IMG/VR virus record: IMGVR_UViG_3300046171_000252
Location: 124,001-188,000 of that record
Length of the DNA stretch: 64,000 nt
Reading direction: 5' to 3' (one strand)
Part shown: piece after piece, positions 159 to 62,274 of the stretch
Layout: each line of letters begins with the position of its first letter
Numbering within the stretch: the stretch's first letter is position 1
Made by a program: the position numbers and the translations under genes
The notes under the pieces: model-generated
What the model was told of the DNA's origin: nothing
Seen by the model: only the letters and a program-made list of their open reading frames with translations
The model's database searches: none

Positions 159-233
159 ATGGAAATCTTAGCAACCTTTGTCATTTTTGGCGCAGTAATG
201 AGTGGAGCATTTGCACTCACCCCTAAAAAATAA
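159..233 (+). CDS. 24-aa hydrophobic peptide (MEILATFVIFGAVMSGAFALTPKK)
   Basis: ATG..TAA directly after the previous small ORF; single TM-like stretch. Confidence 0.45.
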   Translation: MEILATFVIFGAVMSGAFALTPKK

Positions 234-249
234 ATACTAAATAAAACTG

Positions 250-310
250 AATATCGTCGTCGCAGATGGAGGGGTAACTGGCAAAATCCAGTTAATGCCC
301 CTCTTTTTTT
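250..310 (+). ncRNA. candidate late small RNA ending in an intrinsic terminator
   Basis: TAAATA late-promoter cores at 231-236 and 238-243; GC-rich 5' tail TATCGTCGTCGCAG; hairpin GAGGGGTAACTGG/CCAGTTAATGCCCCTC followed by T7. Confidence 0.5.
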
Positions 311-34540: not shown

Positions 34541-34614
<74 letters not shown>

Positions 34615-34633
34615 TTGTCCTTTTCTATTTCTT

Positions 34634-34837
34634 ATGGGCAAATATGATTTTGGTGGGCAACCACCAATAGCAGTCAACATCCTCAGACTCATTAGTGAGT
34701 TAGAAGGTTCTTCCCAAATGCTTAAATATATGGGATTTGAAGAAGATATGAATGCGATCAATGAAATGAAGAAGAGATACTATAAACTCTACTTCAAGAC
34801 CAATAAGGAAGAAAAGGCAAAAAACAATCCTCTGTAG
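34634..34837 (+). CDS. hypothetical protein; stop codon lies inside tRNA-Asn
   Basis: ORF track. Confidence 0.6.
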   Translation: MGKYDFGGQPPIAVNILRLISELEGSSQMLKYMGFEEDMNAINEMKKRYYKLYFKTNKEEKAKNNPL

Positions 34838-34899
34838 CTCAGCGGTAGAGCCGACGACTGTTAATCGTCTGGTCGCAGGTTCGAATCCTGCCGGGGGAG
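34828..34899 (+). tRNA. tRNA-Asn(GTT)
   Basis: TCCTCTG/CGGGGGA, GACGA-CTGTTAA-TCGTC, GTTCGAA. Confidence 0.93.
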
Positions 34900-34979
34900 T
34901 TGACAGGATATTCATCTTGTCGTATACTATGCTTGTCCGTGTGAAGGAAGTGTTTGAGGGATTTTTCTCTCACCACTCT

Positions 34980-35050
34980 GCGGGTTTAGTTTAGAGGTAA
35001 AACTAAAGGTTTCCAACCTTTCGTCAGGAGTTCGATTCTCCTAACCCGCT
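34980..35050 (+). tRNA. tRNA-Gly(TCC)
   Basis: GCGGGTT/AACCCGC, AAAGG-TTTCCAA-CCTTT. Confidence 0.92.
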
Positions 35051-35198
35051 TTCGGATTCCCGTAATCCGAGCATAGTATAAATACTTAACCATTTGTCTT
35101 TCAGTAATTAAAGTAACAAATGGTGATATTAACACGGGACAGTCGAGTCCCTATTCATCTGCGGGTATCCATTCCGCAAGTAACTAAAGGTAAAACAA

Positions 35199-35568
35199 AT
35201 GTTTAAAACGACTATCGCTGCAGCTGCCGCTGCAATTGCTCTTGCTCCAGCTGCTGCCCTAGCCGGTCCCTACGTCAACGTAGAGACAAATGCAGGTTGG
35301 GTTGGCGACGATTATACTGCTGCCACGACAGATCTTCACGTAGGATTTGAAGGCGAAGTAGGTGCTGCTTCTTACTACGTCCAGGCTGGTCCTGCAATCG
35401 TCGCTGTTGACGGTGAAGAGACTGACACCCAGTTCTCTGGTAAAGGCAGGAGTTGGCGTCCCCGTTTCCGATGCTATCGGAGTATACGGTGAGCTCTCCT
35501 TCTTGACCGCAGAAGACGATGATGATTTCGGTGTTGGTGGTAAGTTGGGCGTCAAGTACAACTTCTGA
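35199..35568 (+). CDS. small outer-membrane beta-barrel protein (frameshift near 35443, probable sequencing indel)
   Basis: signal peptide, alternating beta strands, C-terminal KLGVKYNF. Confidence 0.75.
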
Positions 35569-35606
35569 TCTTCAATATAGACACATAAACATCTAGATGT
35601 TATACT

Positions 35607-35634
35607 GGGGGTGCGACGGCATCCCCTTTTTTTT
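35607..35634 (+). terminator. intrinsic terminator
   Basis: GGGGGTGC-GACG-GCATCCCC followed by a T-run. Confidence 0.8.
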
Positions 35635-35839
35635 ATGAAAAAATATTTATAACTTTCATAACGAATCCAGGAACGCTGACCTCCCTTCTGTTACTGGGAA
35701 TGATAGCACTGATAGGGACACTGCATAACCATGCTCACTATGCAATGACTATGGATGCAGATTCTTACGTTAGACAATGGTGTAGAGCATCAGCAGAAAA
35801 CAAAAAGACCTGCATTCGTTATGGTGGAGACATGGACTA

Positions 35840-35868
35840 TTGACAAAACTTTATCTTTCCTATATAAT
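35840..35868 (+). promoter_or_regulatory. sigma70-type promoter of the hli cluster
   Basis: TTGACA-17-TATAAT. Confidence 0.8.
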
Positions 35869-35895
35869 ATGTAAAGAAACATTACGGAGTGTATC

Positions 35896-36114
35896 GTGAC
35901 TGTAACAACCAATGATCGTGGACAACAGAATCTGTTTGCCAAAGAACCCCAGATGTACGTCTCTCAGACTGATGCAGAGCGTTACGGTTATGAGTCATAT
36001 GCAGAACGTGCAGAGAAATTGAATGGACGCACTGCTATGCTTGGATTTGTTGCTGCTGTCATCTCTTATGCTACTTCCGGTAGTGTATTTTTCTTTGGTG
36101 TCTTCGGATTCTGA
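35896..36114 (+). CDS. hli: high-light inducible protein
   Basis: AEKLNGRTAMLGF chlorophyll-binding motif. Confidence 0.9.
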   Translation: MTVTTNDRGQQNLFAKEPQMYVSQTDAERYGYESYAERAEKLNGRTAMLGFVAAVISYATSGSVFFFGVFGF

Positions 36115-36199
36115 TGACTGAAGTTATTTTCACCGTCACGACAGTTGCTTTTTTCTGTCTTCTCGGTTATACTGTGGAACAACTTTCAGAAACCTACTG

Positions 36200-36427
36200 A
36201 TGGAAAACTCTCTACTTGAAATTCTGACTTATTATGTAATTGGAGGAGCACTGCTTGTCGGTGCGCCAGCAGTATTCTTTTTCGTAGTCTTCATGTCAGC
36301 TCTTCAAAATACGAAGGGTCGCATGGTAGGATACAAAGACCACAAACAGTATGGTGACATTTCATCTTATGAGAATGCACCAGTAGACCAAAGCAAATTT
36401 TATTTTACACTAGGAGAAAACACATGA
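36200..36427 (+). CDS. small membrane protein
   Basis: N-terminal TM. Confidence 0.65.
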   Translation: MENSLLEILTYYVIGGALLVGAPAVFFFVVFMSALQNTKGRMVGYKDHKQYGDISSYENAPVDQSKFYFTLGENT

Positions 36428-36531
36428 ACGAAAACGCAGAACGCATCAATGGTTGGGCAGCAATGATCGGAGTCATTGCCGCAATGGGTAGTTATGCAAC
36501 AACAGGACAAATCATTCCAGGTATTTGGTGA
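36424..36531 (+). CDS. hli: high-light inducible protein (35 aa)
   Basis: MNENAERINGWAAMIG...TGQIIPGIW. Confidence 0.92.
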   Translation: MNENAERINGWAAMIGVIAAMGSYATTGQIIPGIW

Positions 36532-36595
36532 TGGGATTTGTAGTAGCAGCACTGCTGTTTCTTATTCCAATTGGTGCAGCAGTTAGGAAATCATC

Positions 36596-36739
36596 ATGAG
36601 TATAGAATGGGCACAGGCAATTATTTTTTTCTTGGCACCCCTATTCTTTATGCTCCTCTTCATAGAAACTAATGAAGATGATGATGGACCACCAGATGGT
36701 GGAATGATGACGCCAGTATATGCACCAAACCCTGTGTAG
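36596..36739 (+). CDS. small membrane protein with DDDGPPDGGMMTPVY tail
   Basis: translated by eye. Confidence 0.55.
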   Translation: MSIEWAQAIIFFLAPLFFMLLFIETNEDDDGPPDGGMMTPVYAPNPV

Positions 36740-36972
36740 TAACCAACACATTTAATTGACAGATAATAATCTTACTGCTTAAATAAAGGCAGTAGGATTA
36801 TTTTTATGCCTCGCAATTCAATAACAAAAGAACAATTAAAATGTGATGTTCTTAAATTAAAAAATCAATTGAAAGATGAGTTTTGTTCTGAATCTAAAAA
36901 AGAAATTGCAGACATGTATTTAAATTTAGTTCTTGACAAAATTAATGAGTATAGATTATAATATTGTCATGG

Positions 36973-37044
36973 GGGCGATTAGCGCAGCGGTAGCGCAGTT
37001 GCTTTACACGCAATTGGTCGGCGGTTCGAATCCGTCATCGCCCA
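36973..37044 (+). tRNA. tRNA-Val(TAC)
   Basis: GGGCGAT/ATCGCCC, GTTGC-TTTACAC-GCAAT, GTTCGAA. Confidence 0.93.
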
Positions 37045-37339: not shown

Positions 37340-37600
37340 ATAATAATACTTAAATCCACAACTTACCGTGTAGCTTTTGGTGAGGAGGTTTAAGAGAAGC
37401 ATTTTAAAATCAAAATGACAGATAGATCTATTGGGTCTGAACTAAATGAGGTTCGCAAAAAACTCAATGATATAGAAAAGAAACAAGAGTTTCTTGAGAA
37501 AGTTATTCAATTAGAAAGAGAGAGGCAACAACGAAGAGGTGAAATACCTTCATAAAATATAGTCGTTGCCGAAAAGTAAATAACATGCTATACTCAACAA

Positions 37601-37690
37601 GTTGAGAAATCAACTGCGGTAATCCCCTTGGCAGTTTAGGATTAGCGGCGATAGGAACTGCCGAGTGCCAGAATTAAAACTGGCACTCTT
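37601..37690 (+). ncRNA. candidate pseudoknotted small RNA
   Basis: TTGCCG-17-TATACT promoter (37566-37594, extended -10); GAAA hairpin; P1 TAATCC/GGATTA crossing P2 GGCAGTT/AACTGCC; terminal hairpin GAGTGCCAG/CTGGCACTC. Confidence 0.6.
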
Positions 37691-37739
37691 GACTACATAA
37701 TTACTATACCGTATAATACACAGGTAAACAAACAGGACA

Positions 37740-37958
37740 ATGGTACTGACTGAAAAATTCAAGAAAGACATTCAAACTCTTTGGGGAGCAGTGAATGGCG
37801 ATTTTTATCTTGATGTAAAGAATCCAAAACTTTTCAAAAAAGTTCGTCGTTTTTATGAATCTCAGGGAGTCATCTTTTCTGATGATGCTCTTGATAATTA
37901 TGAAATTTTGATTGATTGTATTATTCAGGATCTAGAAACTAGTGAGGTTTCACGATGA
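37740..37958 (+). CDS. conserved cyanophage hypothetical protein
   Basis: LDVKNPKLFKKVRRFYE; promoter TTGACT-17-TATAAT upstream. Confidence 0.75.
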   Translation: MVLTEKFKKDIQTLWGAVNGDFYLDVKNPKLFKKVRRFYESQGVIFSDDALDNYEILIDCIIQDLETSEVSR

Positions 37959-59606: not shown

Positions 59607-59647
59607 AGTCAGCAGGTTAAGGAACCAACACATTTCTTAACAAGTCT

Positions 59648-59756
59648 TCACACCCCTCAAACCAAGACCTATAGGGTGTATAAAAACGTCTTTCATACCT
59701 GTATCTAAGGGTGATACAGGAATAGTAAAACCATCATTTCCCTGATGATCTTACTT
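59648..59756 (+). ncRNA. structured psbA leader (PhotoRC-II-like motif)
   Basis: CACCC/GGGTG, CCTGTATC/GATACAGG and ATCA/TGAT stems; complementary AGGG/CCCT loops; family name recalled, not searched. Confidence 0.65.
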
Positions 59757-59769
59757 TTTTTTCAGTACA

Positions 59770-60855
59770 ATGGCTAACGCTACACTTCAACAAAATCAAT
59801 CCCAATCGTCATGGAATAACTTCTGTGATTGGGTCACAAGCACTGACAACCGTCTGTATGTCGGTTGGTTCGGAGTCCTCATGATTCCAACTCTGCTTGC
59901 TGCTACAAAATTTGCTTCATCGTTGCATTCGTTGCTGCTCCTCCTGTGGACATTGACGGCATTCGCGAACCAGTTGCTGGTTCACTCATGTATGGAAACA
60001 ACATCATTTCTGGTGCTGTCGTCCCCTCTAGCAACGCAATCGGTCTCCACTTCTACCCCATCTGGGAAGCTGCATCTTTGGATGAATGGCTTTACAATGG
60101 CGGTCCTTTCCAACTGGTTATCTTCCACTTCCTTATCGGCATCTATGCATATATGGGACGTGAGTGGGAACTCTCTTACCGTTTAGGTATGCGTCCATGG
60201 ATCTGTGTTGCATACTCTGCACCAGTCGCTGCTGCGAGTGCAGTATTCCTCGTCTATCCTTTCGGTCAAGGTTCTTTCTCTGATGCTATGCCTCTTGGTA
60301 TCTCTGGTACTTTTAACTACATGCTTGTATTCCAAGCAGAACACAATATCCTTATGCACCCGTTCCACATGCTCGGTGTTGCTGGGGTATTCGGTGGATC
60401 TTTGTTCTCTGCTATGCACGGAAGTCTCGTTACTTCCTCGCTTGTTCGTGAAACGACTGAAACTGAGTCACAGAACTATGGTTATAAGTTCGGTCAAGAG
60501 GAAGAGACCGTACAACATCGTTGCTGCCCACGGGTACTTCGGTCGCTTGATCTTCCAATACGCATCATTCAACAACTCCCGTTCCTTGCACTTCTTCCTT
60601 GCTGCATGGCCTGTTGTCGGCATCTGGTTCACCGCACTTGGCGTCTCCACGATGGCATTCAACCTGAACGGTTTCAACTTCAACCAGTCCATCCTTGATG
60701 GTCAGGGTCGTGTGTTGAACACCTGGGCAGACGTTCTGAATCGTGCTGGTCTTGGTATGGAAGTTATGCATGAGCGTAACGCACACAACTTCCCACTCGA
60801 CCTTGCTGCTGCTGAGTCAACTCCTGTTGCACTCACCGCACCCACAGTCGGTTGA
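59770..60855 (+). CDS. psbA: photosystem II D1 (indels near 59908 and 60510, net +3)
   Basis: [38 protein letters not shown] across frames. Confidence 0.96.
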
Positions 60856-60882
60856 TATATCTGCTATAATTAATAGGAAGCA

Positions 60883-60944: not shown

Positions 60945-61208
60945 ATGAACGGAAAATTAGATCCAGAAGAAAGAATCTTGGATGATGTCTTACCAGAACC
61001 ACCGAAATGGTTTTCTCAAACTTCTGACGAACCATATGATAGACATCACTATCGATTTGTGTATTCAGACGGTCAAAGTAAAATCTTTGAGAGTTATGAA
61101 CGAGCACAACAAGAATGGTTCAATCTTCCAACAGTATTCAAATCTCATATAGAAGTTTTGGATATTAAAAACAAAAAACAAAAAAATTTAAAAGGAGGTT
61201 TTAAATAG
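60945..61208 (+). CDS. hypothetical protein between psbA and psbD
   Basis: [12 protein letters not shown]. Confidence 0.7.
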
Positions 61209-62274
61209 TGACAACATCAACATTAGTACAACAACAGGGGAGGGGATGGTTTGATGTACTCGACGACTGGCTTAAGCGGGATCGTTTCGTTTTTATTGGC
61301 TGGTCTGGACTTCTTCTTCTACCCACTGCTTATCTTGCTATTGGCGGTTGGCTTACTGGCACGACTTTCGTTACGAGCTGGTATACCCATGGTCTCGCTA
61401 GTTCCTATCTTGAGGGTGCAAACTTTCTTACAGCGTCAGTTAGCACTCCAGCTGACGCTATGGGTCATTCTCTTCTTCTTCTCTGGGGTCCTGAGGCTCA
61501 GGGGGATTTCGTCCGCTGGATCCAACTTGGGGGACTCTGGAATTTTGTGGCACTACACGGAGCATTTCGCCCTCATTGGTTTCATGCTTCGTCAATTCGA
61601 GTTGGCTAGGTTAATTGGAATCCGTCCCGTACAATGCTATTGCTTTCTCTGGGCCTATCGCTGTATTCGTGTCAGTGTGTTTCCTCATCTATCCTCTCGG
61701 ACAGTCCAGCTTGGTTCTTTGCGCCGACGTTTCGGTGTCGCGGCGATATTCAGGTTCCTTCTCTTCCTACAGGGCTTTCCATAACTGGACGCTCAACCCA
61801 TTCCATATGATGGGAGTTGCTGGTATACTGGGAGGAGCACTACTCAGTGCTATTCATGGCGTAACTGTAGAGAATACATTGTATGAAGATGGAGAGCAAG
61901 CAAATACCTTTAAGGCGTTTGATTCAACTCAGGAAGAGGAAACTTATTCTATGGTCACTGCAAACCGCTTCTGGTCGCAGATCTTCGGCATTGCGTTTTC
62001 TAACAAGCGTTGGCTTCATTTCTTCATGTTGTTTGTGCCTGTTATGGGTCTATGGACATCCAGTATTGGCATTATTGGTCTTGCTCTCAATCTTCGTGCT
62101 TACGATTTCGTGAGTCAAGAGATCAGAGCAGCAGAAGATCCTGAGTTTGAGACATTCTATACAAAGAATATCCTACTCAATGAAGGACTTCGTGCATGGT
62201 TGGCACCAGTTGATCAACCACATGAGTCATTCGTTTTTCCAGAGGAAGTTCTTCCTCGTGGTAATGCTTTATAA
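61208..62274 (+). CDS. psbD: photosystem II D2 (several insertions at 61560-61780)
   Basis: [36 protein letters not shown]. Confidence 0.95.

Follow-up and report, generated by a model that had tools for sequence, protein, structure and literature searches.

A single-copy module of about 75 nt, conserved in about 300 records of viruses of marine cyanobacteria and in more than 170 distinct metagenomic variants, carries a short tail that is the exact antisense of part of the 5S ribosomal RNA of the host. The module consists of a late-promoter box, the tail and an intrinsic terminator, and we infer, from sequence and comparison alone, that it probably encodes a small RNA of about 60 nt whose 5' end base-pairs with host 5S rRNA or its precursor. 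We encountered it in a stretch of 64,000 nucleotides (the window; positions 124,001 to 188,000 of IMG/VR record IMGVR_UViG_3300046171_000252), which is part of the 207.6-kb genome of a T4-like cyanomyovirus. A first-pass annotation had noted tandem TAAATA cores, an unusually GC-rich tail, and a hairpin with a T-run with no open reading frame before it. That description proved accurate. It had also proposed a stand-alone late sRNA whose 5' tail is the binding end, with a partner near 37.6 kb of the window. That interpretation is partly supported: the architecture stands, the partner does not. The features are collected in table 1.

Table 1. Features in and around the module, in window coordinates (all on the + strand).
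Position	Feature	Basis
19–47	Sigma-70-like early promoter (TCAACA, 17 nt, TATAAT) of the two tiny upstream ORFs	10 of 12 matches
72–155; 159–233	Two tiny hydrophobic ORFs, 27 aa and 24 aa; upstream context, not part of the RNA	ORF scan; no Pfam or PHROG family
229–236	First late-promoter-like box, AATAAATA (TAAATA at 231–236), overlapping the stop codon of ORF 159–233 at 231–233; probably not the box in use	Not at the family's conserved spacing from the tail
236–243	T4-type late promoter box, ACTAAATA (TAAATA at 238–243), followed by the AT-rich AAACT	Aligns with the family's conserved box
249	Predicted transcription start (G249), 6 nt after the box	Inferred from T4 late promoter geometry
249–265	Predicted 5' single-stranded seed, antisense to host 5S rRNA nt 63–79; 15 contiguous pairs over 249–263 with 5S nt 65–79 (two of them G–U), a mismatch at 264 and a pair at 265; conserved core 251–263	Host genome matches, duplex calculations and comparison of relatives
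251–265	GC-rich tail, ATATCGTCGTCGCAG	53% GC in a 37% GC genome
266–277	Three-codon ATG..TAA	ORF scan
269–303	Terminator hairpin: lower stem 269–274 with 298–303, upper stem 275–281 with 288–294, loop 282–287 (conserved CAAAAU), 3-nt bulge 295–297	−23.2 kcal/mol, z = −3.9 against shuffles; covariation
304–310	T7 run, predicted 3' end of an RNA of about 56–62 nt	Sequence and comparison of relatives
315–321	Separate late box (CTAAATA) of the downstream gene	Sequence
342–656	Downstream gene, preceded by a Shine–Dalgarno sequence; full-length member of phrog_507, function unknown	PHROG search

Is the box a genuine signal in this genome? T4 late promoters consist of an 8-bp box close to TATAAATA, at −13 to −6, with no −35 element and an AT-rich stretch just downstream (PMC2988020), transcription starting about one helical turn downstream, and the cyanophage consensus is NATAAATA (PMC2984593). 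The second box of the window fits this definition. The motif [AC]TAAATA occurs 67 times on the + strand and eight times on the − strand of the 207.6-kb genome, and 34 of the 67 lie 8–60 nt before an ORF start, against 10–11 of 65–91 for permuted motifs, which show neither the strand bias nor the bias toward gene starts. No ORF of 20 aa or more starts between 244 and 308 on the + strand, and this is the only place in the genome where such a box is followed within 140 nt by a strong hairpin and T-run with no ORF between them. The hairpin and its T-run fit an intrinsic terminator; a simple terminator scan did not list the hairpin because of its bulge, which reflects a limit of the scan and is not evidence against the hairpin. 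One small correction to the first-pass annotation is needed, in that the tail is not entirely free: a weak 4-bp helix costs about 2.6 kcal/mol to open.

How widely is the module conserved? Sensitive BLAST showed that the approximately 75 nt from the second box to the T-run are 73–93% identical in 291–299 cyanophage records, always at one place per record and mostly unannotated, whereas the flanks do not match. The window's own genome holds one copy. Few Prochlorococcus phage records appear among these hits (4 of 299), so the module may be missing or strongly diverged in many of them; in P-SSM2 (AY939844 146745–151727) the place upstream of the gp43 gene block, which in S-SM2 holds hsp20 plus the module, has the nol gene with a 12-nt spacer. 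The module sits behind at least eight different upstream genes: it follows a gp212-like gene in Syn9, an hli gene in S-MS29, hsp20 in S-SM2 and psbA in S-PRM1. S-PRM1 keeps the box and a tail identical to that of the window, but has an unrelated terminator hairpin. The tail is therefore conserved independently of the hairpin. In Syn9 the annotated start codon of gp213 follows the T-run of the module directly (DQ149023 about 164180–164189; positions 1560–1569 of our Syn9 locus, L002), leaving no room for a ribosome-binding site, so that either the start is mis-annotated or gp213 depends on read-through.

We scanned IMG/VR using only the hairpin loop and the T-run as bait. Of 119 usable sites, 113 carry the tail, giving 110 unique sequences. 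Of these, 104 have TAAATA upstream of the tail (family consensus [AC]TAAATA) and 71 have it at exactly 8 nt before TATCG, as in the window. About half follow hsp20; the rest follow a Gly-rich protein, tiny peptides like those of the window, psbA (locus L043, for example) and others. The same peptide end (..LTPKK) precedes the module in several IMG/VR contigs and in S-B43-like phages, where the two-peptide mini-operon is conserved at 73%. The hairpin covaries: 96% of cells are paired against 86.5% in shuffles, and there are 90 double-sided changes against 28, a number reached by 0 of 500 shuffles, with slid controls far lower, although four loop-proximal pairs were fixed by the bait. Across 173 unique members the median predicted length of the RNA is 58 nt. 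There are 119 different hairpins of 10–18 bp, all stable and followed by a T-run. The tail has a median predicted unpaired probability of 0.90. In the family as a whole, tail positions are 90–100% conserved. An unconserved tail had been named beforehand as an outcome that would reduce the element to the terminator of the upstream peptides; this is clearly not what was found. The comparative evidence strongly supports a stand-alone late transcription unit whose 5' tail is the functional, binding end, though transcription and binding themselves remain inferences.

In roughly 70% of the relatives (locus L004, positions 1501–1600, and most of loci L006–L125 of our set) the 3' arm of the hairpin contains TTGAC, the −35 box of a sigma-70 promoter, and a TATAAT-like box follows 17 nt later, just after the T-run. 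The T-run thus forms part of the spacer of this early promoter for the next gene, and the A-tract of the loop sits where an UP element would be. Late promoter, predicted sRNA, terminator and early promoter are in this way packed into about 100 nt. Much of the conservation of the 3' arm and loop can be explained by this embedded promoter. The window copy has TTAATG in place of TTGAC and no TATAAT; it has CTAAATA at 315–321 instead. Syn9 and S-PRM1 likewise lack the sigma-70 promoter, yet all three keep the box and the tail.

With what might the tail pair? We looked first within the phage. RNAduplex over the window's own genome found only moderate sites, and complements of the tail in five phage genomes are no commoner than a reversed-pattern control. 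In each of five marine Synechococcus genomes, reached through their psbA loci, the complement of the tail has exactly two perfect matches, and both are the 5S rRNA genes. The match is to 5S nt 65–77, the loop E/helix V strand; the wider stretch of nt about 63–79 comprises the end of helix II, junction loop A, the 5' strand of helix V and the 5' strand of loop E. In Syn9 the duplex is 15 perfect pairs at −29.4 kcal/mol, against calculated opening costs of about 9.6 kcal/mol for 5S and 2.6 kcal/mol for the sRNA; for the window RNA, cofolding gains 9.5 kcal/mol. The module itself was not found in 301 host-family genomes, which gives no support to a host origin.

Is this match meaningful? By our calculation a perfect match of 12 specified bases somewhere in a 2.4-Mb genome is not rare on its own (about 0.3 expected), and BLAST of the whole 5S gene against the phage collection finds nothing, because the match is too short for its statistics. 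The case rests instead on the extensions and the covariation. All 110 elements carry an ungapped antisense run of 13–23 nt anchored at the same 5S position, and lineages with extra bases before or after the core extend the match into neighbouring 5S sequence, including the helix IV/loop D hairpin. One long-form element (L054) has the 5S genes as its best genome-wide BLAST hit in four of five genomes (25–26 nt, 92% identity, E = 0.004, antisense orientation); on the other hand, a second long form (L075) did not single out 5S.

The substitutions in the 13-nt core follow the pattern that RNA pairing predicts. Among the 173 members (35 haplotypes) there are 42 haplotype-level transitions that keep a pair by wobble (C>U opposite G, A>G opposite U) and only two that break one, both at the frayed 3' edge. 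There is no U>C or G>A in the core. Strand-symmetric mutation bias cannot produce this pattern. Furthermore, the 5S rRNA of 30 picocyanobacteria is polymorphic at five positions within the paired stretch, and phage tails exist with the complementary change at each of them, although the targeted scans over-sample some variants. The clearest case is G6>U, which matches 5S C72A, a variant seen only in small, Prochlorococcus-like genomes (12 of 21) and in none of nine Synechococcus-type sequences. The G6>U tails lie on two different contig lineages in different genomic contexts, of unknown host, whose nearest isolates are Prochlorococcus phages: P-SSM2/P-SSM5 for one and P-SSM7/P-RSM6 for the other. 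In the long forms the loop D variant is mirrored as well. Not everything fits, however. One double variant (L333) sits on a contig that resembles Synechococcus phages. Tail position 10 is G in about 38% of elements, whereas the matching 5S C68 variant was seen in only two of 30 hosts, and S-RIM8, isolated on WH7803 (5S G68), carries the G, giving a G–G mismatch. We considered that position 10 tracks the host G68/C68 polymorphism and rejected this as a general rule.

We conclude that positions 236–310 of the window encode, more probably than not, a small RNA of a family conserved across T4-like cyanophages (Kyanoviridae). What the sequences establish is the conserved, single-copy module that moves between genomic contexts, a tail of 13–17 nt that is antisense to 5S rRNA, and variation that preserves the pairing. 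What we infer is that the RNA is a discrete transcript made late from the box, starting near 249 (T4-type late transcription depends on gp55/gp33/gp45, and g33/g45 homologues are reported for cyanomyoviruses; PMC2984593); that the same tail is carried earlier in the 3' UTR of whichever gene lies upstream, in the window from the promoter of the tiny ORFs; and that the 5' end base-pairs with 5S rRNA. In assembled ribosomes the target strand is structured and protein-bound, and 5S rRNA is very abundant. The most plausible form of the target would be nascent, precursor or free 5S rRNA, in which the loop E strand is not yet locked by protein bL25 and the 50S subunit. The effect is a matter of speculation; the likely consequence would be interference with 5S folding or incorporation (new ribosome assembly), or marking of 5S for double-strand-specific cleavage.

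Could the complementarity have another explanation? The RNA may be real but act on host or phage mRNAs that share the seed complement, the 5S match being incidental, or it may compete for something that recognizes this 5S strand. Typical bacterial sRNAs act on mRNAs through seeds of 7–12 nt, the first 10 nt of the tail are its invariant part, the frequent G at position 10 does not fit 5S pairing, and host genomes hold several one-mismatch sites outside 5S. We nevertheless consider this unlikely, since the long forms extend the match specifically into adjacent 5S sequence, tail variants mirror 5S polymorphisms, and no site above the control level was found in the five phage genomes. It is less likely still that the module is only a regulatory cassette, the terminator of one gene fused to the promoter of the next, with no separate functional RNA. 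The arrangement in most relatives and the variable contexts recall the PeSL cassettes of T4-type phages, but a cassette does not explain an invariant tail, its fixed spacing from a late box, its 5S complementarity or the wobble-only substitutions, nor why the window, Syn9 and S-PRM1 keep box and tail without the sigma-70 promoter.

That the tail is a relic of captured host rDNA, or is kept similar by recombination with host 5S genes, seems improbable. The long forms do look like trimmed antisense copies of 5S nt about 55–95, and cyanophages often carry host-derived DNA, but a neutral relic would not stay nearly invariant across about 300 diverged genomes while its flanks decay, the substitutions are strand-asymmetric in the way RNA pairing predicts, and 13–25 nt of identity is very short for recombination. 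Least likely of all is the partner at 37.6 kb proposed by the first-pass annotation. There are nine complementary bases with wobbles, but the duplex is −17 kcal/mol with a large interior loop, 2.3% of genome windows score as well, and the site is not among the top 20 genome-wide. The element there (window 37600–37662) is itself unannotated and conserved at 87–90%, but in only 53 cyanophage records (S-SCSM2R, SynMITS9220M01, ACG-2014f and others) against 299 for the tail module. It lies between a small ORF ending at 37556 and the gene starting at 37741, is followed by a strong hairpin at about 37667–37692, and has no Rfam family and no consistent host match.

How does the module compare with known systems? 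PeSLs are stem-loops placed just upstream of sigma-70-like early promoters in plastic, intergenic regions of T4-like phages, next to different genes, and are linked to gene shuffling (PMC2839356, PMC4122927). Most relatives of the present element have that arrangement, but PeSLs are multi-copy within a genome, with variable stems and no conserved upstream tail, whereas this element is single-copy, follows a late box at fixed spacing and carries the antisense tail; the window copy has no sigma-70 promoter at all. In architecture it resembles enterobacterial sRNAs with a seed at the extreme 5' end followed only by a terminator (RybB, MicC, OmrA/B) and promoter-bearing 3'-UTR sRNAs (DapZ, MicL), which have their own promoter overlapping the end of an upstream gene, a Rho-independent terminator and a length of about 60–80 nt. 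Those RNAs act on mRNAs, usually with Hfq; here the best complement is a ribosomal RNA, the promoter is of the phage late type and no chaperone is known. The CfrI RNA of cyanophage S-PM2 (reviewed in PMC12197685) is likewise a non-coding RNA encoded by a cyanomyovirus, and some copies of the present module lie directly after psbA, but CfrI is about 225 nt long and cis-antisense to phage psbA/F-CphI, whereas this predicted RNA is on the sense strand and complementary in trans to a host RNA. C/D-box guide RNAs of archaea and eukaryotes also recognize rRNA through 10–20 nt of antisense. The module has no C box (RUGAUGA), its CUGA (247–250) lies 5' of the antisense stretch where a D box would lie 3' of the guide, and bacteria and these phages are not known to have the methylation machinery, so that the resemblance is only in the logic of targeting.

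No Rfam 15 family matched the window at gathering score, and nothing relevant appeared at E up to 10 in positions 1–700. Literature searches on the sequence itself, cyanophage sRNAs, anti-5S RNAs and Syn9 ncRNAs found no mention of the sequence or of an anti-5S phage RNA, although a published description elsewhere cannot be excluded; the cyanophage RNAs listed in PMC12197685 (wcaG, manA, glnA, abiF, CfrI) do not include it. Phage-encoded small RNAs are few and none is known to aim at ribosomal RNA, so that while trans-antisense sRNAs are familiar, the class of target would be unprecedented. It is possible, though we hold this only tentatively, that cyanomyoviruses encode a dedicated antisense RNA against host 5S rRNA that blocks 5S maturation or bL25 binding, or docks on ribosomes, and that evolves in step with host 5S variants; it would be the first phage sRNA known to target a ribosomal RNA. 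If so, one of the most abundant virus groups in the ocean carries a conserved RNA directed at a core ribosome component of the planet's main marine phototrophs. This would open a new mode of host takeover, or of control over ribosome biogenesis, and would give a compact sequence marker that may carry host information for uncultured cyanophages.

Elsewhere in the window, psbA (59770–60858) reads as D1 only at its two ends in one frame, the middle part being in the frame of ORF 59865–60698, which implies two frameshifts. psbD (61208–62274) also appears split between two frames (61208–61609 and 61615–62274). This could be assembly error in the virus record, or the genes could be genuinely disrupted. 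A PhotoRC-II RNA motif (59638–59733, 77.5 bits) lies upstream of psbA and four tRNA genes lie at 34541–37044, both expected features of cyanomyoviruses.
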